A stretch of 42,336 nt of DNA from Perkinsus chesapeaki ATCC PRA-425 (GCA_013115145.1 JAAPAO010000289.1:1-42336), one strand, 5' to 3'; numbered from the stretch's first letter, positions 1-31,770 are shown. Program-made: numbers and translations. The notes: generated by a model not told the origin, from the sequence alone.

Positions 1-2300
1 AACGAAACCATCCTTTTTTAAAAGTGTCAGACAGGTTGATAGCTCCGACCTAAGGGCCTGTCGGGCCTCCTCGTCAGGTTGCAGGTGATATCGGAGCAGC
101 CTGTGGCAAAACCTAAATGATGGCCTCGAGGGAAGGGGACAAGTGGAGGGCAACCTTTGTGGTATCTCATCGACGTTGTTGATGAGTTTAAGGCAGATGA
201 TCTCCAACAGCGCTCGAGCGAGGTGTGGGCCTGGAAGTGTCAAGAATGGCAAAGGCTACCACGGGAGAGCCACAGTAGGGCCAAGTAGGGGAAGTCTCAC
301 CGGTGAGACGGGAGGACAAGCCAGTGAGTTGGGCATTAATGAGGTCCTTGGCCACCTTTGCCTCACGATCGTCTTTCACGCACAGCACGGCTTCACCTCT
401 ATTTGCATCTGAATGCTCCATGACAGAGTCATTGAGACTAGTCGAACCTCCAAAGCCCGCTCTGCCAGCTCGGCCGCACATCTGCCGTAGACGGGACGCA
501 TCGAGTGGATGGATCCCCACTTGCAGTGATCGAATGATAACTCTACGGGCCTGAGTCGACAGTCGGTTAAGAAAGCCCATGGGGAATAGAGGTACGGGAA
601 GATTGACGCCGGCAGCCAGGGTCGATGTCGCGCAGAGAGTATGGATGTAACCATTACGGAAGGCTGTCTCGATGACCCTTCTCTCTTCCATGGTGTGGCC
701 CGAGTGGTGATACCTGTGAAAACGGCATAGTCAAATGGGTAGTGCATGCACTCACGCGATGCCGCTAGGGATGCACCTTTCCAAAATAGGGGATAGACCA
801 GCTGGGCAAGCCCGAAGGATCTCGACCGCCTGCCGTCGTCCCCGAATGCTGAAGGGTTCTTGGGAAGTGTATGCAGGCTTGTGTGCTTACATGGTCTCAT
901 CGGAGTCCCACGGTACTCCAGGCCAGGTGTTCGCGAGATGCGTTGCGGTCTTCTCGCACCACACCTTTGTGGCACAGAAGACAATTACACCAGTTGCGCT
1001 TGAGGAGGAGGATGGTACCGTCTTCGATTGGTCAGATAATTCCGAGCAGGCTTCCTAAGGGTTATTGAATACCGGAAGGGCGCGGGTTCGAACCCTCGCA
1101 CGGGCTGCTTACTTGAGCCACTTCCCACACTAGAGCTGTTATGCGGTCAGGGTCCCCTCGTATCACTGGTAGTTCTCTAACTATTTTGTCCAATTCGGGA
1201 CTGTGCAAACGCGGGCCGACTTTAATAAAGTATTCCAGTGGCACTGATTGCAGGCGTTGTTGCTGACATGTTGGTGAGCAGCAGAAGGCTACCTGGACGG
1301 AATTCAGTGTTGAAAGTGTCCGCGTCGATCAGCCAGCTCTTAAGAGGATCTAGGCTGGGGAGAGTTGCCGACATACACACCACTTGGAGCTCGTAGGGCT
1401 CAGCGGAGGCGGCGGACACACGACCCGTGGCGAACCTGAGAGGTATCGGGTTCGATTCCTGGGGAGGGCATCTCGACCAACAGCATTAATTTGAGCAAGA
1501 TGAGCTCCAAGATATGCCCTCTTTGTTCATCTCCTATCATATGTAACTCGTCAATAATAACCGTTCCTGAGGCAGGATGTGACGGAAATGTGGTATTAAT
1601 TGCTACCAACGTTCGCAGTTGAACTATCTGCCTGTGACACTAGACGGTTTACCATACCATTAATCTTCTCGAGTGTACCTGTCCGCGAAGCTGCACGCTG
1701 ATCGTTGCCTGTAGAATACCCAAAGCCACGTCGACGCCCGCAGTCCAGCCGCCGATGAGATCCTCCTTATCGACGGAAGCGTTTGAATGGAACGCTTCAA
1801 TTCTGAGTGGGATGGATTTGGTGTCAATGTACATCTGATGGGCTTACCTCAGGGCTGCCAGACTCGAGCTCTGAGCCGAGTCTCCCCAAACTCGTCGAAG
1901 TTGATGTAACTTCTCTTGGCAAATAGAGACGTATCTATCGATGAGCATTGTGAACTGAGGCGGTGAAGTGACGGACGGTAGGGTGTAGAGGCCCCGGAGG
2001 CCCCGAAAGAGAAGACGTCTTAGCATGATGAGCTCTGCGACGAGGCTTTTGCCGCCACTAGTCGGGGCACAATAGACGCCACATTTAAAGGGGCGGTGGG
2101 CAGCAGCAGCTGCTGCTGGAGTGCAGTCATCATCAGTAGGTTCTTGGAAGCCAAAGATAGAGCAGCCGAGGAGGGCCCCTGAGAATGGTGTGAAAGGACT
2201 GTGATGGGCATAGCAGCAGCTTACTGAGGCAATCAGATTGCCAAGTATAAAGTCCAGTGATACCGCTGGAAAGGCGGTATCTAAACGATGAGGCGGAAAT
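1..2300 (-). CDS. Multi-exon DNA polymerase theta/HEL308(HELQ)-family SF2 helicase; 3' part runs off the window start, 5' end approximate
   Basis: Spliced exons give the Q motif [13 protein letters not shown], Walker [86 protein letters not shown] and RALLEII, all typical of the POLQ/HEL308 helicase domain. POLQ vs HELQ cannot be resolved because the C-terminus is outside the window. Confidence 0.88.
1055..1112 (-). other. 58-nt intron containing an antisense tRNA 3'-end-like fragment (B-box/T-arm)
   Basis: GTAAGC...TTAG intron between ...VWEVAQ and EACSELS...; the + strand reads ccggaagggcgcgggttcgaaccctcgcacgggct. Confidence 0.6.
1436..1481 (-). other. 46-nt intron containing an antisense tRNA 3'-end-like fragment
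   Basis: Removal restores the frame [29 protein letters not shown]. The + strand reads aggtatcggg-ttcgatt-cctgg-ggagggc-a: a pairable T-stem, a 7-nt acceptor 3' strand and discriminator A. Confidence 0.65.
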
Positions 2301-2639
2301 ATGGTACAAGGTTGTTCAGTGAATTCAAGTTAACGGATGAAGATGATTCCTGTCTGTTGGTCGAGAGCTGGACACCTTCCCAAATAAACCTTTTAATAAC
2401 AATCAAGCTTCTTCGTCTTTTTCCTCGGGCGCGGCACGGCCTATGAGGCCCTACAGCCGCCTTATATTTTATCAGTTAATACTAACCCTCTCATTTTCCA
2501 CATCTCTAATGCACACTTGCCGTGCTGCCCTATGACGCCTCGGCTGCCAATAAGAATGTCAACATTTTATCTCCCCAACTATAAGCGCTCTTCTAATTCG
2601 GGGTTCCCTAAAGTCCCCCATAAGCTTGGATGCGCCATC

Positions 2640-3383
2640 TTACGCTTCAACTATGTTCGGGGGTAGATGCCAGAACCTAAGGTCTGTTGGTGTAAGGGGA
2701 GGGTAATGCTGACAGTAGGGTAACGATCTAGGGTTCAGGATCGACGAGTTGGGGCCATACTCGTTGATGGACATCCTGGGGAAGAGTCCATGTCGGTTTA
2801 CACTGTGAACGTTACAGTACACTTTGGCTCACCTGGTCAGCGCCTTCTGGTCTCGCTCTTGTGCCGTATAAGCATCTCTCCCACGTGGATAGGCGATGCC
2901 GTCCAGGGAGACGTATATGGCGACTCGGTCGCCGTCGAGCACTCGAGAGCGCCATAAGCCCAGCCGACGGTTAGACTGTTTCTTCAGCATTTGACGGACC
3001 TTCGCCCGCATCTTGCTCTTGTACTGCCTAGCTTGATCACGCTTCCTCTTCCGTTCGAGGCCAGCTCGCTCTCTTAGTGGACTAGGAGCCCCGATGCTCC
3101 TAGAGTTGCCAGTGATCGGCACAGGAGCCGGAGGCTCTTCAACTGAGGTGGCACCGATGGTCAGGAAGGAAAGGTGGAGATCATCACCTTGGTGTGGTTT
3201 GGTGTAGTCCTTAAGGTAGCCGGCGTAGTTCTCCGGCAGGACTATATCATCATCCGAGTGGCGGTGCCGGTAATCGGTGGAGTAGCTTTCGACGGGTAAT
3301 AAATTGTGGTAGTAGTCATCATCATCGATAGACGAGGTTTGTTGATTCCAAGCTACTGGCGACATGTTACTGACATTATACAA
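2640..3383 (-). CDS. Hypothetical two-exon protein with a basic helical segment (LERKRKRDQARQYKSKMRAKVRQMLKK)
   Basis: The 184-aa ORF joins ORF 2640-2822 in frame through a GTGAGC...CACAG intron. Confidence 0.55.
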
Positions 3384-4473: not shown

Positions 4474-7400
4474 ATGAGTGGCAGTGCTGGTGCCTCTGTC
4501 TCAACCGGAGGAGAATCTACACTGTAAGTTTTTGGCCTTCTGCTCTGTCGGACTGGGTCCCTACAAATGTAGACTATTGGGTGATCATCGAATCATCTGC
4601 ACGAAAGTCCGTCGCTCGAATGTCGCATAAGCTTATCAACGCGCCTCTAGTTTTGTGAAGGTCATCGTTTGTAGGTACTTTCCAGTGGACTCCTCCGATG
4701 ACTGGGTATCACTGGAAAGCAGGGACTTGCCGGAGGACGGTGATAAGATACTTGACCTACTCCGAATGGAGCTGGTCCCCTTGAAGCTCTGGCATGCACT
4801 TGCTGTAGAGTATTTTAGACAGAGGAATGATACTGTTAATATGATGAAAGTGCTGGAGGCAGCTACTGATAAGGAGCTGGAGAGCATTCAGGTGGGAGAT
4901 GTTCTCTACTGGTGATGACTTTGCTGTCAGATGTACGCCAGCCAACTACACCAAATGCAGTTTCTCATGTACGACTCTATGGGAGCATCATACTTGCAAA
5001 AAGGTCTCTATGATGGTGATGAGGAATCTGGTAGTATTATTGGGGCGATTCGGGTGAGTAGGAGTTGATTCAGTTAAGAAGGCGACGGACATGTACCAAC
5101 GTGGAGAGAATCTTAACCCCTTCGACCCTCGAACATGGCTCTCAAGAGCATGGACGGAGTTTTGCAAGTAGTGTATTGGTCGCTTAAGTGAATGTAAATG
5201 GCCATTGATCAGCTACATCAAATCCTCGGATGCAAATGGACCGTCTGTTGGAGGGCATGAGGCTTTAACAAAGTGTGTATCACATCTTGGTAATGTTATC
5301 AAGGCGGGGCCTATGGTCAATGAAGGTGGGGTGGCGGATATGGTCAGAGCACGCCTTCTTAGAGGTAAGTCTACTGGGAGGAGAGATCAACGTATTTTAC
5401 ATAATAAAAACTGATATTCCGTCTAGAAAAACCAAGGCAAAAGCGAGCATGAATTATCCTGATAAAATCTGACGCTTTTTCTAACAGGTGCGGCATTACT
5501 TTTGTTGGAGCAGCCAAAGGAGGCATTGACAGAGTACCGATTGGTGCTGCAAATGGCTGGGAGCCGCGTTCCGACCACTGCTAAAGTGGCTAATACTGCT
5601 AGGCTTGGTAGTAACGGGGCAGGAGAATGGGACGATTGGGACTGGGCGAGGATATTGGTTCCGTCAGGAACGGCTTGCGTGTTTGGCGGGGGAGCCGCTG
5701 GGTTATTTGGATTAAGATTAACAGACTCGTGCAGGAGTTAGGCGAATAATAGCTCCAACAGGTCTGCTTGGAATCACGGCGTAACCTGTCAGTTAATCTG
5801 TGAAATCTCGGAAGAGTGACGGAATCTTCAGTGACGAGATATTTGGTAAAACTGTTTCTTAGGGTTGGGAAATCAGCTGTCGTTTAGCGGGCTTAAAGAA
5901 TGCGAAATCGACTGTAAACTTGATAAATTCTGACCGAATCTGGTTCGGGATTGAGTGGGCTTATCTTTCAGGTATAGCAGCATGCCAGATGAAATTGGGG
6001 AATTTACCCAAGGCACAGGAGGCCATATTCCGGGCATTGGCGATGACTAGGAAAGGGGACCTGGATGGTGATGTAGTGGCGGCAGCGGCAGCGATACTGC
6101 AGGCTGGAGAGAGCTCTAGCGGGTACTGAGACTATACGAGGGAGCGGTATGAGTATTTAGGTCGTTGGATGCGGGTCATTTAGCGCAGGAGACAGCTCTG
6201 GCTGAGAAGGCGGGGGACCATCCCGTTGCTTTAACCATTCTTGCACGACAGGTGGGAGAGATGTCGGGCAGGGGGATCGGACCTGGGTGCTTTGGTTCAG
6301 AGCCTGGTGTTGGCGGCCGCGGCTAAGGATGATGAGGAGGGCCGTAAGAGATATCTTAGGACGGCCCGACGACTGGTAGGCTGAGGTAGCGCGTTGTGGG
6401 AAACAGAATGGTGGCAGGCGGAGGCGGCGGAGTCTCGGGTATGTGGGAAAGGGGCGAGACCGTTGTTGACGGAAATATGCCTGTTGAAGGCTAAGATCAC
6501 ACACGCTGAAGGGGACGTGGAGAAGGCTAAGAAACTATATGAAGAAGCTACAAAGCAGCTACCTTTGGGGAGCATGCATTACTCACATACAGCAAGCAGC
6601 AACAAGGACACTCCTATACCGTCAATGCTGCCGACCACGGAGAGGCTGTCATGTGCAGCTCTGTCGGGCTTGATTGCGACATCGGCGGATGATGGCACGG
6701 AAACTGGACGAAAGATGCACGTTCATCACGGGAAAAAGTTGCTGCAACTGCAGGCTGTGTCGGCGGCTAATACGGACAGCAGTGTGACTCATGGCGGGCT
6801 GAGGTTCGATGATGCTATAGCGTTGTTGTTGGCGAGGCAGTTGGGGCATGCACCGTTGCCTAGTGATAGTAGGAAGGCATTGGAGTTGGTTGAAGGGGTG
6901 AGTATGCATGCTAAACAAGCTAAGGAGAAGTAATAAGGGATACGAGGGGAAAACCGGCAGCGTGGTTATTGAACGTGTGAGCGATTATACTAAATGGGGA
7001 AATGGCGTTTGCCAGTGCAAGATAGGGTAGGGCCAGTTGAAGCAGATTGCAATGAGTAATACAGCTAATAGGATACTACTGAGGTTTCACTGACCATCGG
7101 AGATGATATTGCCGCTATGGTTATTTTGAAATGATCCTTCCCTACAGGCACGGCACATTTGACCAGAGTCTAGATTATGAGAGACATAAGTTGTATGTGT
7201 CATTGGTGTTGGGGGGCAAGAATATGGGAGCATTAACTAAGGCCGAGGTAGGGCTGCTGCTGCTTGGTGTGGTGTTGATGTATATAGGGGATGGTGGGTA
7301 GGCACAGCATTGCTTACAGGAGCTCAATGAGTTCTTGGCAGCTAAGGAGGAGAATAAGGAGGAGGATGTGTCAGTGGTTCAGGTAAGGTGCTGGAATGAC

Positions 7401-12359: not shown

Positions 12360-13445
12360 TTGGGTGATCTACATGCCTCTAGTTGATATGTCTGTCCGTT
12401 CAGTAGATGGTCTACGTCTCTCCGGTCTGTGCATTGACTATTGATTCTATGATTCATCTACTTTCTGCGGTTCGTACTTGAAACTAGTGAAGGGGTCAAT
12501 CTAAGTTTGAAACACGTCATGTTTGTGATAGATACCGTATCTATGTGAACTCATGATCCTAAGGTTCACGCTCTGTGAACTACACTGTAGTCACTACAGC
12601 GGTTAGTGGTATCTGTGGGTGACGTAGATGGTTTTGTTTTGAACATCAAGTATTGGCTGCGTGAGCTGTCTTTCTTTATGGCTTACTTATGATCCGTGGG
12701 TGATCCACCCGCTCCTGGTGTTACACCAGTGGTGTATATGTCAACTAATGACCCAGTGGGTGGTCTACGACTCTCTGGTCTATGAACTAACTGGTCAAAA
12801 TATCAGTGATACTATGAATGGTCTAGATGTTTTTGTTCGTATGGGTACTGACGGGCTAATGGTGATCCGTTTTGTTGTCCGTCCGTTGACTCATGGCATC
12901 GTCGGTGATGCACGTTTTTGCGGTTTGTACGTGAACTAGCGAGTCACTAGTAGTGACAACGTCATACCTTTAAATGTTGATTTTCTGTTCGTGGAGCACT
13001 GATGCAACTGATGAGTTATTGATACTGGGTTGATGGGCCGGGTTATTATGGACTTCTCAGAAGCAACTGGTGTTTTTGTTTGTATGCGTACGATNNNNNN
13101 NNNNNNNNNNNNNNNNNNNNNNNNNNNNNNNNNNNNNNNNNNNNNNNNNNNNNNNNNNNNNNNNNNNNNNNNNNNNNNNNNNNNNNNNNNNGCCGGGTTA
13201 TTATGGACTTCTCAGAAGCAACTGGTGTTTTTGTTTGTATGCGTACTGATGGGCTAAGGGTGATATGTTTTTTGTCTGTCCGTTGGCTCATGGCATCGTC
13301 GGTGATCTAGGTTTTTGCGGTTTGTACTCGAACTAATGGCTATGTCGTAGCTTCGAATAATGCTTTTTCGTTCGTGGAGTACTGATGCAACTGATGAGTT
13401 ATTGATACTTGATTGATGGGCTAGGTCATTATGGACTTCGTAGAA
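12360..13445. repeat. Degenerate, T/G-biased tandem repeat region with a ~240-bp unit, spanning an assembly gap
   Basis: The block gtttttgttcgtatgggtactgacgggctaa...catggcatcgtcggtgat...gttcgtggag(c/t)actgatgcaactgatgagttattgatact...attatggacttc occurs at ~12827-13068 and again at ~13224-13445. Shorter ggtgatcta/ggtctacg motifs recur from ~12360. Confidence 0.7.
13095..13191. other. Assembly gap (97 N)
   Basis: Run of N. The 55 nt at 13037-13091 are repeated exactly at 13192-13246. Confidence 0.98.
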
Positions 13446-14997
13446 GCTCAGCTGTCACGAGTACCACCATGATACCGCAGTTTTGTGAGCAATGTTCACT
13501 TGACGTCTCTCGTGAGCAGAACTAAGGCATTCTATGCAAATAGCGCCATGCTTTTGCTTGCGAGTCGTTTCCTGTGCAAACAAAGTTTGTAGTGCCTGAT
13601 ATTCACGAGACCCGTCCGCAGGATTTTTTGTGCCCCCCTCTCTTTTCCTCTGGACGAACTCACCATAATGATTCCAACCACAGCGTCGTCTATCGAGAAT
13701 GTCTCTGCGAAACCGCAGACTATGCAGTAAGTGGCAACAGTTACAGTTGGCAGCTGTGGATTTCACAGTGTGGAAGCTCCTTTGGTTTAAACTGTGGGCA
13801 GCCTTGCAGTTCGCACTACCAGTGCAGTGCAGGGTCTGCGCTACCTCATCTGGACGGCTGTCAAAAACTGGAACTCTTCGCTTTCAGGCAGTTCATCGTT
13901 CAATGTGCGACCGCTGAAGACACGCGGAATCTAATGGCATTCATAAGCAAAAGCCCCGGCATAGCTTGCTATCAGAGAGTGAACCCAGAAAGTAAGATCG
14001 TGTATCATCAGCCTATCGGCAGCCGGCGACCTGTCACGTAGCTCCTAGGGCATGACGCGTGATAGACGCCCGACGCATGGGCGACGGGGATCTCTAAAAT
14101 CGCAAGGATTGCTATTGTTGCCCACCCGGGTACCCAGAAGGCGCTCCCGCCCACATCGGGACTGCACGGAGTTGATTCCGCTGCACAATACAGTTGATAC
14201 GACTCCTGAAGGTTGATCAGAGCATTTCTTCCCCGTAGTGGGTCGAGCTCTATTCTTCACTGTTTCAGCTTGGACGCAACGTCTCCCGTCACCACCGATG
14301 ACGCCTCGCGAACTGGAATCGCCAGGAGCTCTCTGCGCAAAAGGCATTACATCGAAGGGAATAGATTATGATGCGAGCATCGGCGAGGAGAGGTCTCCTT
14401 TGGTTCTGAGCGGCCCCTGTATAGTAGAAGACAAGACTGATGCCCCACAGCGGGCCGATGGAAAGGAAGGTCATGACTCGCACTGTGAGTTGGACTGGAA
14501 ACGATAGATGAGTGTTCGCCGAGCACTGTTCGGTCACCAGTGGCTCTTCCACTAACACGAGGTTTCCCTTGTGTGCGTGTAATACATGGTCTACCTTGTG
14601 CGTGGTCCCATCCTGGTGGTGCGGCTTCCATGCTGTCCCGTGGCCGTCCACAGGTTATCTTTTCGACCGTTTTTTATATCACCGATGCAGGGCAAGTATG
14701 CTATCGCTGTGCAAGCTTCGTCACATCCACGAAACCTCGGATTCCGAGGATATATCCCGAGTGCTTTCGTCGGATAGTGTGGACTCCACACTGTGGAGGT
14801 CCTATGATCGTTACCTCCATATTATAGACCGTCAAGTTATAGAGTCCATAGTATAGACTATATTATGAAGGTGGCGACCGTATCAGCTAAGGCTATAACA
14901 CAATCAACCTCAGAACTTCCCCGTCGAGCTTGTGATAACCGGGCATGGCTTTCTAGCGGTAACCGCTTCGCAACACTCTGTTTCTATGTTTCTCAGC

Positions 14998-25427: not shown

Positions 25428-28400
25428 GGAACTAGCAAAGCTGCTACAGAGAGATAAGAAAGTGGTGGTAATTACTATTAGAATAGTGTCGCGTAGCTCC
25501 CAGAAGATGTGACCGGAGGCATACTATGAACGCAAGAACTTGAGCCAAGATGGCTACAGACTCACTAGATGCTAGCTCAGAACCGCAGGCTCGGAAAGGA
25601 CTAGTAATAGCTATGCATGCTGAAGCGCTCGCCCAGAAATATTGATCGAACGCATATACAAAGCATAGAGCAGAGCAACATCAGGAAGTACGTCACATCT
25701 CGCCCCCTCAGGTGGCGACTCACTGAGCCACCTAATCAACGCTCTCTCTGGAAGGGTTAATAGGAACCTTCCTGACTATTCTGGGAGACAGCTTAACCAA
25801 AGCTTCCACGTCTCCAGTGACAGATAGTTTACCATCATTACCAATGTAAAGAGGTCTTAGCTGATTATCCCATAGACGACATTCTTGAACCAAATACTCA
25901 CCACGACCAGTCCAATTTTTAATAAGACCGTAACGAGAAATAGAATCATACGGATCCTTCCAGGTAACAAATTTACCAGCCGCTCTTCGGGTAATGCGAG
26001 GCTCTCCTGAACCTAAGCTAGTTGAAGGACGAGAGTGTACATTACGGGAAGAATCGCGAAGATCTACATCTCCATCAAGATAAACTTTTAAATGATCAGA
26101 ACTGTAAACTTGTTTACGACCGTCGGGCAACTTAACTTCATAACAACGTGATCCAATCTTACGTGTTATCACTCCTTCACGCCACATACGGTCTAGCTTA
26201 TGACTAGGACGATGCCAAACCAGAACCTCATCCCCTTCCTCAAATTTCTCAATTGGGTTAGGACTCTGTGGCTTCTGAGATTGCCAGAGCAATTTCCAAT
26301 CTTCTAAAATCTTCGTTCTCCTTATACGGAGTTTCTCACAGGCCGAGGAAATGGCCGATGAGTTTTTCTTATTGAAATGTGAAACATATTTGATAATGTC
26401 ATCATTATTGATCGGACTTGAACTCACCTGTGACGACGCCCATTGGGCTAAAGGGGATTGAAGTGGGAAACCATAAACTGCCTCGTGGGGAGTGATACCC
26501 AGAATTGTATCAACAGTTGTATTAACTCGAGCTTGGGCTAGGCCTAAGGCATCTTTTAAAGTTAGCTTGGGATCTTCCTCCAACAAGGCACGTAGAGCCA
26601 TATTAACCACCGCATGAGGCCTCTCGTAAAATGACCCACTCGATGGGTGATACACAGGTATCAAGACGTGCTTAATATGATAAAGAGAGAGAAGAGTATC
26701 AAAATTAATGCTTTTGACAAATTGAACACCATTATCAGTGATCACACACCGCGGACAGGAGTACTTGAGCAGGAATTCATTCTCGAATACTCTACTCACC
26801 TCCTCAGCAGATACCTTTTTCATAATGAAGAATAGACAATACCTTGTCAACAAGCATGTAATAGATAAGATGAATCGCTCACTGCGACTAGCGCCTACGA
26901 GTGGGCCTACTATATCAACTCCAACGGTTTCGAACGGCCTCGATGGACAAAACCAATGAGATATAGCAGCTTTACGTATCCTGGGAAATTTAGTAAACTG
27001 ACAAGCCTTACAGCATTTAACACATCTTTTGATATCAGACCTCGCCTTAGGCCACCAAAATACTCTCATAATCAACTTGAATGTATTATTAATACCAATA
27101 TGACCATGTAATCTATGAAAATAACTTATTACTTCGTTAACAAATGATGAAGCATATTTAGCAGACGGAAGAACAATCTTCGGAGAATCCTCATAATACT
27201 CACTAGGCTTAGTAGATACTTTACATAAGATACCATCAACCATAAGCATATGTTGGGCATATTTTTGGATATTTTTAGGGCATTTATCAAAACTGGGGTT
27301 ACTTGACTCTAATACCTTTATGCTTTCAGCAGCCATAGTATCTTTATGCTGCTGAGATTGAATAAATCTAGTAAATATATCGCCAACAGATACAACATCA
27401 CCATTACGCCAAGCTTGAAAGCAGTTACTCAATAAGACATAATCTTGAAAGCTGGGCAAATTATCAATAGTGGCAACAGAGACACTGCAACAATCTAGCT
27501 CAACCACATCTATTCCCGTACAGAGATCTTCTGCAACCTGAGGCAGCGACCGGATGTCCTTGGCAGGAATAGCCGTATCAATACGAGAAAGTAGATCTGG
27601 TTGTGCATTCTGACTTGCCGATACATGAATGAACCGGATAGAGAGTTTATGCGAGCGAACAAGTCTTAACATATCAATACAACACTCACGTAATCTGGAA
27701 GTGGCCAACCACTCCACTCCCTTCATCTTATGTGGGCGATCATCTAATCGTCTGATCGCAGTAGTAGAGTCGCTCGCAAGCATGACGGATTCTAACTGTG
27801 GGAAGTGATCATTAATAAGTAAAGAACAGAACTGCCCCAGCGAGCTGCTTAAACAGAAAAGCTCCCTCCTATTCGCATGCCAATAAGTGGCATTACGTGC
27901 AAACAGGTGGGAACGAGCACCAATAATCACGATCTTATAAGTCGCAGCTCCCGAGGAAACATTCTTTTCAATCGAATACCAAACAGAAGCATACCCACAG
28001 TTAGACGCGTCATTACCGATCACTAATATCTTAACAACAGAAAGTAAGGGCACCTCTAGAGGAATACGCGCCCATGCTTCTACCGCAGCAAATAAATGGT
28101 TATTAACCTCCTTATGAATATCAGGAGGCAACGGATCATCAAAACCTAAACTCTGGGATGCACTAATCCTACGAGCCCAATCACAATGACTACGAGCCTG
28201 AACTTCCTCTAGTGAGAACCATAAACTAATGAAACGACCAGCTAGACAAAAAACATCACGTTTACAATTAGAAACTGCAGCTTCAATCAATGGCGGTTTC
28301 ATGCGCAAGACGGAACCGTCCCACGACCAATAAGCACCGAGCCATTTAGAATAGTCGGTACTCCAAACCGCCTTCTTCTCTTCCGGGATGTCGAAACCCA

Positions 28401-31400
28401 CCAGATTGAGAGTCTGATTCAAAATCAGCTCAAAGTTCTCAAGGGTTTCTTGGCAAGATATAACTAATATATCATCCATCATCCGTATGGTTGTCACAGT
28501 AGGAAAGTAATGCTCCAAGATGCTCCATACCAAATCCAGTGATTGCTCTAGGGCTCCAGGCCCTATGGCCAGACCAAAACTGAGTCGGGTACTTCTCATG
28601 GTAATACCACGGCCATAATTTATGAAAATCGGATGAGAAATGGCTAGCCTATAAAACGCTCGAGCCAAATCATACTGGCGAACCTGTTTTCCTGGGGTGA
28701 GGGTCCCTCTCAGCTTCTGAACAATGCTTGCAACACTATGTTTTTTACTAGATGCTACGGGAGCTTTCACATTTAAGACTCGCGCATCTATTACAGGACG
28801 AACTTTGGTAGTTTTCGCCATGGAAACCACCGGAAAAGCTGTCGCCGTATCATCTGGGACCTCACCTGGGAAAACTCGCTCCCACCACTGCCGATTCTCA
28901 TACATTTCCAATTCTTTCAACCATAACTCATATTGCTCCGGACTCAGTTTTTGTAATAATCTATTAGGTGACCACGATCTTCTGTCTCCTTTACTTTTAG
29001 TCTCATCCCAATCCACCATAAATCTATATTTTTGGGTAGGTGTATCACGTACATCTTCATCCGTTAATCTAACTAATCGAATCCTGTAACCTTCCGCATT
29101 ATTAACAGAGATCCATCCTTCATTAGCCAATTTCTCGAAACATTTATCGATAGAATCACAGTCGCTCCAATCTCTTTTGATAACAGTTTTTGGTACATCA
29201 GCTGGCACCCACTCCTGGGTTTCTTGCTCGGACTCTTCCGGGCCTTCCTCGATTTCCTGATTGACGGCATCCAAGACCGCTAAATCATCTCCGGAGAAAG
29301 AGGAACTCAAACTGCCTTGCAGCTCGACGTTGCTGCAATCGATCCTTTCTGGATTGATAATCTCAACGAAGGACACATCCGAGAACTCGTAGGCCCCGTT
29401 CCTTTCTCTAGGTAACGGCTCCGACCTATTACGCGAGGAATCGGATTCTCTTAACGCATCCAACAACTCTTGCTGGATACACTCAAAAGCTGACTCATCG
29501 TCAAATCTATATACCAGCTTTGCACCACATAAACGCAACGCTGACCTCCCCAAAATGAGGTCAAATGACAGCCCTGACGCTATCAAAAATGGTAATAGTA
29601 AGTCCTTGCCACCCACTGTGCATGGAATAATTGTTTCTTCCGTGAGCAACTGTGTCTGCCTGTTAGCAAAAATCGCGCGAAGCGGCGCAATAAGCCTACG
29701 CTTCACTTCCAACTGCTTTGCCAAACTCTCACTAATCAAAGCCAGCGCTGATCCACTATCTATCAACGCTTCATGCTCAACTTCGTCAATCGTAACTTTG
29801 CATGTACTGGGAGGGCACGCTGTTGCTAAAGTGAGAGATCTAAACTCTTTAGACTCCTTTTCTTCAATCGATGCGATCTCGATGGAACCCTGCTCCACTT
29901 CGACCGCCATCGTTTTATGATTAGGCGAAGAATTGGGTTTAGATTCTACGCCCGACTGTGCTTTACCATTCTTCTCGGCTTGAACTGGTGGTTGACGTTT
30001 GGGACAATCCCGAGCGATATGTCCATAGTTCTGGCAATTAAAACATTTTATACTACTCTGACCTTCGCTTGTTCTAGAGCTCGGCCTCCACTGCACCTGA
30101 CGTTGTTCGCTATCTCGACGGAACTGCTGCTCGTGCTGGCGACCTCCCTGGCCCTTTCCCACAGAGAAACCTTTTCCAGGCAGGAATCCCTGTTGCTTAG
30201 AATCTTGGAAGTCTCTCTCAAAGAACTCGGCCGTATCAATGATGCTGGCCAAGGGCTTACTATATAGTTTAGCACCATAACGAGTTTTGAGCTTTGCAAC
30301 CAAGGGACCAGGCAAGCCTTTAAGAAATTGGTTCCGCACATCCATAGCAGTTAATGCCGGTAGTGAAGCTGCTAGTTCTTGCACTCTACCACCGAATGCA
30401 AGTACATTTTCATCAGATCTCTTATATAATTTGCTGAAATTACTAGCTGCTCGACCTTCACTCCACTGACTGGCGTATTCTGTATCCAGACGCTCCCATA
30501 ATAAATTGAAAATATCCTCTTGCAGTTCTCCAAGATCGTCCAAATCATTCAGCTCTGCCAATTGATCTTGGCAAAAAGTTTTCGCTCTACCAACCAAGTT
30601 TCGAGTCAAATAATAACATGCCAATCTTCCTTTCAGCTGGTAACTGCGGCATCCCGACACCACTCGTTTCTTAAAGATCTCATATGTCACATAAGAAGTA
30701 CTAGACTCTTTAGTATCAACATTCCAAGGAGCCGCCTCTACCAACGGAAGAGAATTCAACTCGATTTTATTTTGAACTTGGTCGCTGGCAACTTCAGGAA
30801 CCTTATCTTTGGCCTCTAGACCTAAGCCTTTGGCAATTCTTCCTATCATCGCAGAGTTATTATCATTAAAAATAGACTCCAAAGCTTGCAATTTAACTAA
30901 TAAGCGCATAACACATAAGCTTAGACAATAGGCCAACTCGGCCGCTCCATCTCCCAGACCACTATCAAGCGTACACCAATAAATTGCAACAAATACTGCT
31001 CGCCAAACTTCACCAAAGTTCGTGGCATTAGTGCCTCTAGTAATCTCTTTAAAGAACTCCTTCAGCTCAGTACCTCCCTTTCTCACTAACACTCCTATCT
31101 TCGATCTTGCTCTTGCTTCATCTGCAATATCGAGAAGTTCATCAACTATTAGATAAACTTTCTCCGCCATAGCTTTATCCTCCGGCTCTTCTGGCTGGAT
31201 GTCCCGCAAGCCCTGCATCGACCACCAATTTGTCGCGTAGCTCCCAGAAGATGTGACCGGAGGCATACTATGAACGCAAGAACTTGAGCCAAGATGGCTA
31301 CAGACTCACTAGATGCTAGCTCAGAACCGCAGGCTCGGAAAGGACTAGTAATAGCTATGCATGCTGAAGCGCTCGCCCAGAAATATTGATCGAACGCATA

Positions 31401-31770
31401 TACAAAGCATAGAGCAGAGCAACATCAGGAAGTACGTCACAAATAGCTATTAGTAAATTGCTTTATTAAATAATACAAGGCAGATAGATACTTATGAACA
31501 TCAGACTCACGGGAGAAGTACCGAGGGTGGGGTTCGAACCTGCGCCATGCGCATGCGTGCAGATCCTGGCCCAGTTGTGTGGCAGATTATTATGTGCCTT
31601 GAAAAATCTTGTACACTTTGAATTATGCTATTTCCAGTGTGAGAATCGATTACAGTGGCCCGCGCAATATTCAACTGCCCATTTCCGACTGGAGTGGCTG
31701 GGGGCTCCAAACTGTTCCGAGAAGCAGCTTTTAGATTTGCCTCTTCGATTTTAGGAGGTATTATTTAACA
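25428..31770 (+). CDS. Putative host gene whose intron hosts the LTR element
   Basis: Exon ELAKLLQRDKK (25428-25461) ends at a GT donor. After the element, a CAG acceptor at 31483 gives in-frame IDTYEHQTHGR..PGPVVWQIIMCLEK. The empty-site intron would be ~62 nt and AT-rich. Confidence 0.35.
25487..25697 (-). repeat. 3' LTR (211 bp)
   Basis: Identical by visual comparison to 31231-31441. TGTGAC...GCGACA on the element strand. Confidence 0.97.
25539..25560 (-). promoter_or_regulatory. SL-like 22-mer in the 3' LTR
   Basis: Same sequence as in the 5' LTR (+ strand cttgagccaagatggctacaga). Confidence 0.9.
25698..25709 (-). promoter_or_regulatory. Polypurine tract GAGGGGGCGAGA
   Basis: Purine-rich run directly abutting the TG of the 3' LTR on the element strand. 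Confidence 0.8.
25732..31266 (-). CDS. Gag-pol polyprotein (1844 aa)
   Basis: Zn-knuckle CFNCQNYGHIARDC; aspartic protease ALIDSGS; RT TTKVRPVIDAR/YDLARAF/RLSFGLAIGP/MMDD/WLGAYW; RNase H NDAS...RREL...SDS...HVSASQNAQPDLLSR; integrase H..GH.G...CKAC, VGVDIVGP, TDNGVQF, YER. Confidence 0.97.
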   Translation of the reverse strand: MPPVTSSGSYATNWWSMQGLRDIQPEEPEDKAMAEKVYLIVDELLDIADEARARSKIGVLVRKGGTELKEFFKEITRGTNATNFGEVWRAVFVAIYWCTLDSGLGDGAAELAYCLSLCVMRLLVKLQALESIFNDNNSAMIGRIAKGLGLEAKDKVPEVASDQVQNKIELNSLPLVEAAPWNVDTKESSTSYVTYEIFKKRVVSGCRSYQLKGRLACYYLTRNLVGRAKTFCQDQLAELNDLDDLGELQEDIFNLLWERLDTEYASQWSEGRAASNFSKLYKRSDENVLAFGGRVQELAASLPALTAMDVRNQFLKGLPGPLVAKLKTRYGAKLYSKPLASIIDTAEFFERDFQDSKQQGFLPGKGFSVGKGQGGRQHEQQFRRDSEQRQVQWRPSSRTSEGQSSIKCFNCQNYGHIARDCPKRQPPVQAEKNGKAQSGVESKPNSSPNHKTMAVEVEQGSIEIASIEEKESKEFRSLTLATACPPSTCKVTIDEVEHEALIDSGSALALISESLAKQLEVKRRLIAPLRAIFANRQTQLLTEETIIPCTVGGKDLLLPFLIASGLSFDLILGRSALRLCGAKLVYRFDDESAFECIQQELLDALRESDSSRNRSEPLPRERNGAYEFSDVSFVEIINPERIDCSNVELQGSLSSSFSGDDLAVLDAVNQEIEEGPEESEQETQEWVPADVPKTVIKRDWSDCDSIDKCFEKLANEGWISVNNAEGYRIRLVRLTDEDVRDTPTQKYRFMVDWDETKSKGDRRSWSPNRLLQKLSPEQYELWLKELEMYENRQWWERVFPGEVPDDTATAFPVVSMAKTTKVRPVIDARVLNVKAPVASSKKHSVASIVQKLRGTLTPGKQVRQYDLARAFYRLAISHPIFINYGRGITMRSTRLSFGLAIGPGALEQSLDLVWSILEHYFPTVTTIRMMDDILVISCQETLENFELILNQTLNLVGFDIPEEKKAVWSTDYSKWLGAYWSWDGSVLRMKPPLIEAAVSNCKRDVFCLAGRFISLWFSLEEVQARSHCDWARRISASQSLGFDDPLPPDIHKEVNNHLFAAVEAWARIPLEVPLLSVVKILVIGNDASNCGYASVWYSIEKNVSSGAATYKIVIIGARSHLFARNATYWHANRRELFCLSSSLGQFCSLLINDHFPQLESVMLASDSTTAIRRLDDRPHKMKGVEWLATSRLRECCIDMLRLVRSHKLSIRFIHVSASQNAQPDLLSRIDTAIPAKDIRSLPQVAEDLCTGIDVVELDCCSVSVATIDNLPSFQDYVLLSNCFQAWRNGDVVSVGDIFTRFIQSQQHKDTMAAESIKVLESSNPSFDKCPKNIQKYAQHMLMVDGILCKVSTKPSEYYEDSPKIVLPSAKYASSFVNEVISYFHRLHGHIGINNTFKLIMRVFWWPKARSDIKRCVKCCKACQFTKFPRIRKAAISHWFCPSRPFETVGVDIVGPLVGASRSERFILSITCLLTRYCLFFIMKKVSAEEVSRVFENEFLLKYSCPRCVITDNGVQFVKSINFDTLLSLYHIKHVLIPVYHPSSGSFYERPHAVVNMALRALLEEDPKLTLKDALGLAQARVNTTVDTILGITPHEAVYGFPLQSPLAQWASSQVSSSPINNDDIIKYVSHFNKKNSSAISSACEKLRIRRTKILEDWKLLWQSQKPQSPNPIEKFEEGDEVLVWHRPSHKLDRMWREGVITRKIGSRCYEVKLPDGRKQVYSSDHLKVYLDGDVDLRDSSRNVHSRPSTSLGSGEPRITRRAAGKFVTWKDPYDSISRYGLIKNWTGRGEYLVQECRLWDNQLRPLYIGNDGKLSVTGDVEALVKLSPRIVRKVPINPSRESVD
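31211..31227 (-). promoter_or_regulatory. Primer-binding site TGGTGGTCGATGCAGGG
   Basis: Starts with TGG 3 nt after the 5' LTR. It is complementary to a tRNA 3' end ...CCCTGC-ATCGACC-A-CCA. The tRNA identity is not determined. Confidence 0.85.
31231..31441 (-). repeat. 5' LTR (211 bp)
   Basis: Identical to 25487-25697. Contains the gag-pol ATG at 31266. Confidence 0.97.
31283..31304 (-). promoter_or_regulatory. Spliced-leader (SL)-like 22-mer in the 5' LTR
   Basis: TCTGTAGCCATCTTGGCTCAAG vs the Perkinsus SL ACCGTAGCCATCTTGGCTCAAG (recalled from established knowledge): 20/22, last 19 nt exact, 16 nt upstream of the ATG. Confidence 0.9.
31518..31562 (+). other. Predicted 45-nt intron beginning with an antisense tRNA 3' end
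   Basis: GT-ACCGAGG-GTGGG-GTTCGAA-CCTGC...CAG; the reverse complement resembles a tRNA-Leu-type 3' end, GGTTCGAACCCCACCCTCGGTA-C. The reading frame is also open if the segment is retained. Confidence 0.45.

Follow-up and report, generated by a model that had tools for sequence, protein, structure and literature searches.

The DNA analysed here, referred to as the window, is a stretch of 42,336 nucleotides from the oyster and clam parasite Perkinsus chesapeaki ATCC PRA-425 (GCA_013115145.1, JAAPAO010000289.1:1-42336), with positions counted from its first nucleotide. Window 25487-31441 is, on the minus strand, an intact long terminal repeat (LTR) retrotransposon of Ty3/gypsy order (Metaviridae), and both of its LTRs contain a copy of the spliced leader (SL) of Perkinsus. 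The features described in this section all lie on the minus strand. The element is bounded by a direct pair of LTRs, each of 211 bp and 100% identical to one another (5' LTR, 31231-31441; 3' LTR, 25487-25697), with TG...CA termini; they start with TGTGACG and finish with GCGACA. A target-site duplication, CTATT, could be read from the sequence on either side (5' copy at 31442-31446, 3' copy at 25482-25486). The primer-binding site (PBS) TGGTGGTCGATGCAGGGCT (19 nt, 31209-31227) begins 3 nt past the 5' LTR and is perfectly complementary to the 3' terminus of tRNA-Ile(AAU), over its final 16 encoded nt plus CCA; genes for tRNA-Ile(AAU) are present in the same genome on contigs C420 and C344, with 3' ends reading ...AGCCCTGCATCGACCA. 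At the other end of the element, the polypurine tract GAGGGGGCGAGA (25698-25709) abuts the 3' LTR.

Between these signals lies a gag-pol open reading frame (ORF) of 1844 aa (25732-31266), annotated in P. chesapeaki as FOL47_005154, which starts inside the 5' LTR, with its ATG at 31266, and whose frame runs through U5 and the PBS. Pfam domains were found in the order gag (nucleocapsid), protease, reverse transcriptase (RT) and integrase (IN) that is typical of gypsy elements, namely zf-CCHC at aa 406-423, an aspartic protease (retropepsin-like) at 490-578, RVT_1 at 885-977 and Integrase_H2C2 at 1374-1426, while RNase H and the rve core were not detected at the Pfam threshold in this ORF. In an RT tree, the element clusters with further gypsy-like elements of the same genome. 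Its identical LTRs and open frame indicate that the insertion is recent, and the element is also transcribed, as indicated by the cDNA described below.

Spliced-leader copies in the LTRs of the window and of the genome

LTR retroelements need the 5' end of their RNA, with the terminal repeat R, to jump strands during reverse transcription, and trans-splicing takes this end off the primary transcript. In retroviruses and Ty elements, R is a short repeat present at both RNA ends that guides the transfer of minus-strand strong-stop DNA.

The published SL1 of P. marinus is ACCGTAGCCATCTTGGCTCAAG (PMC3101222, PMC9399869), and the SL RNA genes of the P. chesapeaki assembly (41.7 Mb, the genome searched throughout; C-numbers denote its contigs), located at C411:603 and C2742:298, read ACCGTAGCCATCTTGGCTCAAG|GTAAAT. 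Both window LTRs carry TCTGTAGCCATCTTGGCTCAAG on the minus strand, as a 22-nt copy at 31283-31304 in the 5' LTR, on the presumed U3/R border, and at 25539-25560 in the 3' LTR. The LTR copy is identical to the Perkinsus SL at positions 4-22 (19/19) and has TCT at positions 1-3, where the host has ACC; its 19-nt core GTAGCCATCTTGGCTCAAG matched twice in the window, compared to 0 matches expected from 100 shuffles. The copy is followed by TTCTTG, not by a GT donor, and the ATG at 31266 comes exactly 16 nt on. The sequence-only reading of this DNA had described an LTR retrotransposon with the SL in both 211-bp LTRs, then 16 nt and the ATG of the 1844-aa ORF, in an mRNA-like arrangement with TTCTT in place of a donor, and this description is exact: LTRs, target-site duplication, PBS, polypurine tract and gag-pol ORF are all present. 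The identity of an SL RNA gene was rejected, given TTCTTG at the donor position and a flank that does not resemble the intron of the two genuine SL RNA genes (C411 and C2742). The window copy thus has the form of a relict SL, i.e., an SL exon copy without GT donor or SL intron located upstream of an ORF, and the locus combines two known kinds of sequence, an LTR retrotransposon and a relict SL. The SL copy lies 52 nt before the LTR end and the PBS, where R should begin.

We then considered the SL in the whole assembly. With at most one mismatch, the SL core occurs at 41 genomic places, compared to 0 for a control pattern. The 15-mer CCATCTTGGCTCAAG is found exactly at 36 places, two of which are the SL RNA genes, and is preceded by GTAG at 32 of them. 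As far as the contexts were sampled, which was not exhaustive, at least 24 of the 34 non-gene copies fall within LTRs or retroelement 5' ends, where they can be assigned to about nine mutually unrelated families from gypsy, Bel/Pao and a divergent clade. Three further full-length elements, whose LTR sequences are unrelated, have the SL in both LTRs. The C8 element (LTR of ~190 bp, 51 nt from SL to LTR end) and the C61 element (LTR of ~420 bp, 30 nt from SL to LTR end) both continue into the PBS TGGCGACACC and form a separate divergent clade in the RT tree (support 100/98); the C919 element (LTR of ~390 bp, ~205 nt from SL to LTR end) is Bel/Pao-like and has Pfam matches to Peptidase_A17 and IN H2C2. 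The SL is also found in four LTR-like repeat families, represented on C217/C476/C553/C2893/C3352, on C211/C1631a, on C1555/C3065/C3246 (C3246 adjoining a gypsy pol remnant) and on C1348/C3397 (with a PBS-like site TGGCGAC...). Additional copies are of the C8 type (C1068 and C69), the C61 type (C3196) and the C919 type (C1631b), and two stand at retroelement 5' ends, upstream of a gag with a CCCH finger and then an RT-like ORF on C135, and upstream of CCHC knuckles on C3238. Ten copies are unclassified (C2407, C2594, C2851, C3036, C3349, C3375, C3405, C387, C812 and C2474); the ORFs tested beside those on C2407, C3349, C3375 and C3405 were either too short or without a Pfam match.

The SL is the sole sequence that these otherwise unalignable LTRs have in common. 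It always lies 30-205 nt before the LTR end and PBS, and the gag ATG usually follows it at 16-47 nt. The expectation that other LTR families would carry the SL at a fixed distance from this ATG was therefore borne out for the SL itself, in about nine families, but not for the distance, which ranges from 16 to 234 nt. The alternative that the SL was captured only once from a trans-spliced transcript does not fit its recurrence in about nine unrelated families of one genome. The 21-nt SL2 of P. marinus was absent from the P. chesapeaki assembly.

Several features of the SL surroundings were also observed. Just after the SL, a stretch of 6-7 nt that ends in AG, RTCTYAG|TTG (TGCGAG|TTGG in C61), is common to many unrelated SL-bearing families (loci L004, L009, L010, L019, L026, L027, L030, L033 and L217) and resembles an additional acceptor site or a conserved beginning of R. 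In some families a GT follows the SL copy (CTCAAG|GTTCTTTC; L014/L015/L020 of the C919 family, L008, L010 and L019); it is largely kept across old copies of the C919 family and is formally donor-like, without similarity to the SL intron. Moreover, in several families the gag ATG is made of an A and the TGG of the PBS, as in A|TGGCGACACC of C8/C61, A|TGGCGACGTC of C1348/C3397 and AAATGGTACCC of C3377 (loci L064, L065, L017, L218 and L035), so that translation begins on the primer-binding site, 28-50 nt from the SL. Finally, the U3 part of the window LTR (its first ~100 nt) has a third copy, 95% identical, at C3423:9455-9557 (L003:1500-1769). This partial copy is wholly divergent before the SL position and continues into short tandem repeats, as a chimeric or variant LTR.

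SL junctions in cDNA and variation of the LTR copies

Element RNA was found among the Logan contigs of one public run, a 454 reverse transcription PCR metatranscriptome of a marine sample; the element was not found in two further RNA runs with the same species label. One cDNA contig covers the SL copy: it matches 31082-31299 with ~100% identity and then continues, on the plus strand, with TGAGCCAAAA. Read on the element strand, ...TTTTGGCTCAAG is joined to CCATCTTGGCTCAAG, followed by TTCTTGCG... An SL is therefore joined at the internal AG of the LTR copy (GTAG|CCATC, acceptor AG at 31298-31299, minus strand), after SL position 7, leaving a 15-nt relic, as expected of a relict SL that has received a fresh leader; this is a single observation from a single contig. 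The sequence-only reading had proposed trans-splicing at the terminal AG of the SL, or transcription starting at the SL; the sole cDNA over the site shows GTAG|CC instead. Direct priming on the genomic SL copy would be expected to yield the primer followed by TTCTTG, with no relic, and mispriming upstream of the copy would require a 4-of-6 match at the primer 3' end. True trans-splicing at 31298-31299 is therefore the simplest reading, though of one contig.

A second cDNA contig matches 27448-27833 and bears the loose end TGAGCCAAAATG, which places another SL-joined AG inside pol (CAG|TT, 27832-27833, minus strand). Since primer complementarity is almost nil there, this junction looks like a real acceptor. 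It is followed by a 6-codon out-of-frame upstream ORF and then by an in-frame ATG, codon 1162 (27781-27783), located upstream of the integrase. The corresponding RNA may be a subgenomic mRNA produced by trans-splicing, or it may reflect splicing noise.

The first three positions of the SL vary more than its surroundings. They differ in 4 of the 6 closest within-family pairs, where flank divergence predicts far fewer differences (P about 0.014), and the triplets found between close relatives are TAC/TCC, ATC/ACC, TCT/TCC and ACT/ACC. None of 23 SL copies has C at position 1 or a purine at position 3. Given that positions 1-3 are SL-like yet variable, the full 22-mer appears to have been captured, with its first three bases at an unstable junction. 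In retroviruses and Ty1 the U3/R border is error-prone, as strong-stop DNA ends there and is extended after transfer, and by analogy the variability at positions 1-3 may reflect the behaviour of a U3/R junction at strand transfer.

Length changes were also observed next to the SL. In the C217 family, copies reading SL+GTCTCAG+TTCTT coexist with copies reading SL+TTCTT, and the two forms do not track overall similarity. The loss of the 7-nt GTCTCAG would fit splicing at the downstream CAG followed by SL-guided strand transfer or, alternatively, slippage within the CTCA repeat. The C8-type copy on C69 has a 13-nt deletion whose end lies exactly at GTAG|CC.

Readings of the SL copy and their weights

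We favour, with a rough probability of 0.55, the reading that the SL marks the U3/R border, that it was captured by reverse transcription of a trans-spliced RNA and that it now provides both a splice acceptor and homology for strand transfer. From the arrangement described above we infer how the capture took place, where R lies and what strand transfer gains, as follows. The SL copy would correspond to the 5' end of the mature element RNA and hence to the start of R. SL-trans-spliced element RNA would be reverse transcribed into minus-strand strong-stop DNA ending in the SL complement, which would be carried into the new LTR. The AG dinucleotides of the LTR copy could then act as trans-splice acceptors, by which the RNA would obtain the capped host SL for translation; the new RNA 5' end would still match the 3' LTR over 15-22 nt, plus downstream R, so that first-strand transfer would survive trans-splicing. 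Acquisition would have been independent in lineages of several superfamilies. The SL would be retained in replicating lineages, where it would reconcile trans-splicing with the need for a terminal repeat, and inserted dead copies would then decay.

A stronger version can be proposed tentatively, although we hold it to be rather improbable: the host SL would itself be the first 22 nt of R, repeatedly adopted, with the genomic RNA arising from trans-splicing and not from a promoter start in the LTR, and with positions ~4-22 re-copied in each cycle from host SL RNA. If true, part of the LTR would be templated by the host, the precision of the U3 promoter would be dispensable, and the conflict between trans-splicing and LTR replication would have a general solution.

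Several results weigh against an SL that serves at the U3/R border. Elements exist without it: no SL-like sequence was found in the LTR or upstream region of C2973 (LTR of 152 bp, pair 99.3% identical), C531 (LTR of 230 bp, pair 99.6% identical) or C3377, which the RT tree places as sister to the window element (support 98/95). Likewise, the nearest relative of the window ORF in P. marinus (P0004, contig GG682187) is complete, with identical 183-bp LTRs, and has no SL. As these elements look young or intact, LTR replication in Perkinsus does not depend on the SL; with C3377 as sister to the window element, the SL has been acquired or lost on several occasions that are recent compared with the divergence of the families. 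In old dead copies of the C919 family, SL core positions are lost at ~13% and flanks at ~20%, which is near neutral; decay after insertion much like that of the remaining sequence is, however, expected of any element sequence. That related families might lack the SL, or let it decay neutrally, had been named beforehand as evidence against a role, and both were found, in the sister C3377 and in the dead copies, although about nine families do carry it. Moreover, a tandem of SL and relic was absent from the 41.7 Mb at up to 3 mismatches, save for one dubious hit, which argues against the copying of internal-AG-spliced RNAs with the SL end guiding transfer. Such RNAs could be mRNA only, transfer could occur in register before the added SL is copied, or the replicating RNA could be one spliced at the terminal AG or started at the copy. 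The RNA evidence consists entirely of the two contigs, both essentially identical to the window element, and their loose ends read TTTT where Perkinsus has TCTT, most likely from a dinoflagellate SL (DinoSL) primer, as judged from the library type.

Part of this evidence would be met equally by a neutral relic, that is, by accidental copying of a trans-spliced transcript into an LTR, with no role in the cycle and intact only while the insertion is young. Relict SLs that stem from cDNA recycling are known from dinoflagellates and have been reported in P. marinus too (PMC3229502, PMC6050394), the dead C919-family copies lose the SL near the flank rate, and SL-less families are equally young and intact. 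This reading is nevertheless unlikely, since the accident must have recurred in at least three unrelated retroelement lineages and been kept in every full-length copy found; most of the non-gene copies (at least 24 of 34) lie in retroelements and not in ordinary genes, the SL is all that the unalignable LTRs share, and its AG is used as an acceptor in one cDNA. The lack of tandems in the DNA is, in turn, predicted and most simply accounted for if, as in the sequence-only reading, the leader is encoded in cis, with transcription starting at SL position 1, or regenerated at the terminal AG. The RNA 5' end would then equal the 3' LTR copy exactly, and the internal-AG junction would be a side product, mRNA at most. 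Hypervariable positions 1-3, resembling an RNA 5' end, agree with this, and for dinoflagellates either AG of a relict SL is considered able to serve as an acceptor (PMC3229502). The one cDNA that covers the site uses the internal AG, however, and re-copying to the very end of the SL predicts ACC at positions 1-3, which only about one third of copies have; we consider this account quite doubtful.

Insertion in or beside an SL RNA gene, in the style of SLACS/CRE/CZAR, or an assembly chimera, was rejected as highly improbable. Several SL-bearing contigs do break at or near the SL (C1348:1, C2594:1), making it an assembly branch point. The SL nevertheless lies within both identical LTRs, with the target-site duplication outside and no SL-gene sequence beyond it; GT donor and SL-intron similarity are lacking; and the element resides on a 42-kb contig with unique flanks, while a cDNA contig of independent origin runs from the SL copy across the downstream LTR into gag.

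Few systems have been studied for the way in which retroelements live with pervasive SL trans-splicing. In Caenorhabditis elegans, the 8-kb gag-pol/genomic RNA of the Ty3/gypsy element Cer1 escapes trans-splicing, and SL1 is found only on a 2.4-kb spliced mRNA (PMC3315495). Like Cer1, the window element is an LTR retrotransposon of a trans-splicing host, some transcripts of which carry the host SL; unlike Cer1, whose LTR encodes no SL according to the same source, the Perkinsus elements hard-code it. Relict SLs are described for recycled cDNAs (retrogenes) of dinoflagellates and also for P. marinus in those parts of PMC3229502 and PMC6050394 that summarise Slamovits & Keeling 2008, and in dinoflagellates the new SL is joined at an internal AG (PMC3229502). 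The window shares with them the intronless SL-exon copy upstream of an ORF and the joining of a new SL at the AG of SL positions 6-7, which leaves the 15-nt relic CCAT(C/T)TTGGCTCAAG. It differs in that the copy belongs to LTRs of autonomous retrotransposons, at both ends and beside the PBS, and in that tandem relic arrays, as seen on the dinoflagellate contigs L096, L106, L151 and L156, are lacking in P. chesapeaki DNA. As in Ty1, the gag ATG of the window element lies in or next to the LTR; unlike the R of retroviruses and Ty elements, the presumed start of R would be 22 nt of host origin, which the host is able to add after transcription as well. SLACS, CRE1 and CZAR are non-LTR, site-specific retrotransposons in the SL RNA genes of trypanosomatids. 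They too associate a retroelement with SL sequence, whereas the window element has LTRs, contains the SL as part of itself and inserts at sites unrelated to SL genes. The searchable literature, which leaves out many subscription papers, yielded no account of an SL encoded in LTRs or of how it relates to R, so that an earlier mention is possible.

Thus, LTR elements of different superfamilies carry the host leader where R should start, and one was caught trans-spliced there, which suggests that these elements folded the RNA-capping trick of the host into their own copying cycle. If true, a retroelement would here define the 5' end of its RNA in a new way, via a host RNA-processing signal; the mechanism would tie LTR elements directly to the cDNA recycling by which the genomes of dinoflagellates and perkinsids were shaped, and would provide a built-in tag for active retroelements in Perkinsozoa. 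In practice, SL-based surveys of transcripts or retrogenes in these organisms will catch LTR elements.

Other species, metagenomes and further observations

In P. olseni, an orthologue of the C919 Bel/Pao element was found with 62% aa identity; its copy L080 is degenerate and without LTRs, and contig L081 (5,979 bp) starts 93 nt before the LTR end, downstream of the expected SL site. The contigs examined from a protein search with the C61 RT were short and without LTRs. A metagenome scan for the SL core picked up SL genes of dinoflagellates, along with tandem relics and other contexts; at none of the 80 metagenome SL loci was there a match to Perkinsus retroelement proteins, and the long ORFs beside the SL copies contained no RT or IN in Pfam.

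Elsewhere in the window, 12871-13447 is a T-rich stretch in which imperfect direct repeats, 55-114 nt long, 82-100% identical and spaced 155-397 nt apart, form a cluster unrelated to the element.

Among the metagenome loci, the long, AT-rich JGI contigs L094, L159, L110, L138 and L109 (samples Ga0214919/21/23) carry as many as three full DinoSL copies each (..TTTTTACCGTAGCCATTTTGGCTCAAG), placed immediately before ORFs, with RNA polymerase Rpb2, a PIF1 helicase and a dynamin-like GTPase as neighbours. These contigs may come from a large DNA virus, or from an AT-rich protist, in which the dinoflagellate leader is hard-coded before genes. On another environmental contig, L135, a Helitron-type Rep/PIF1 helicase ORF at 62-3190 lies 1.4 kb upstream of a DinoSL copy at 4586, which is immediately followed by a 477-aa ORF.

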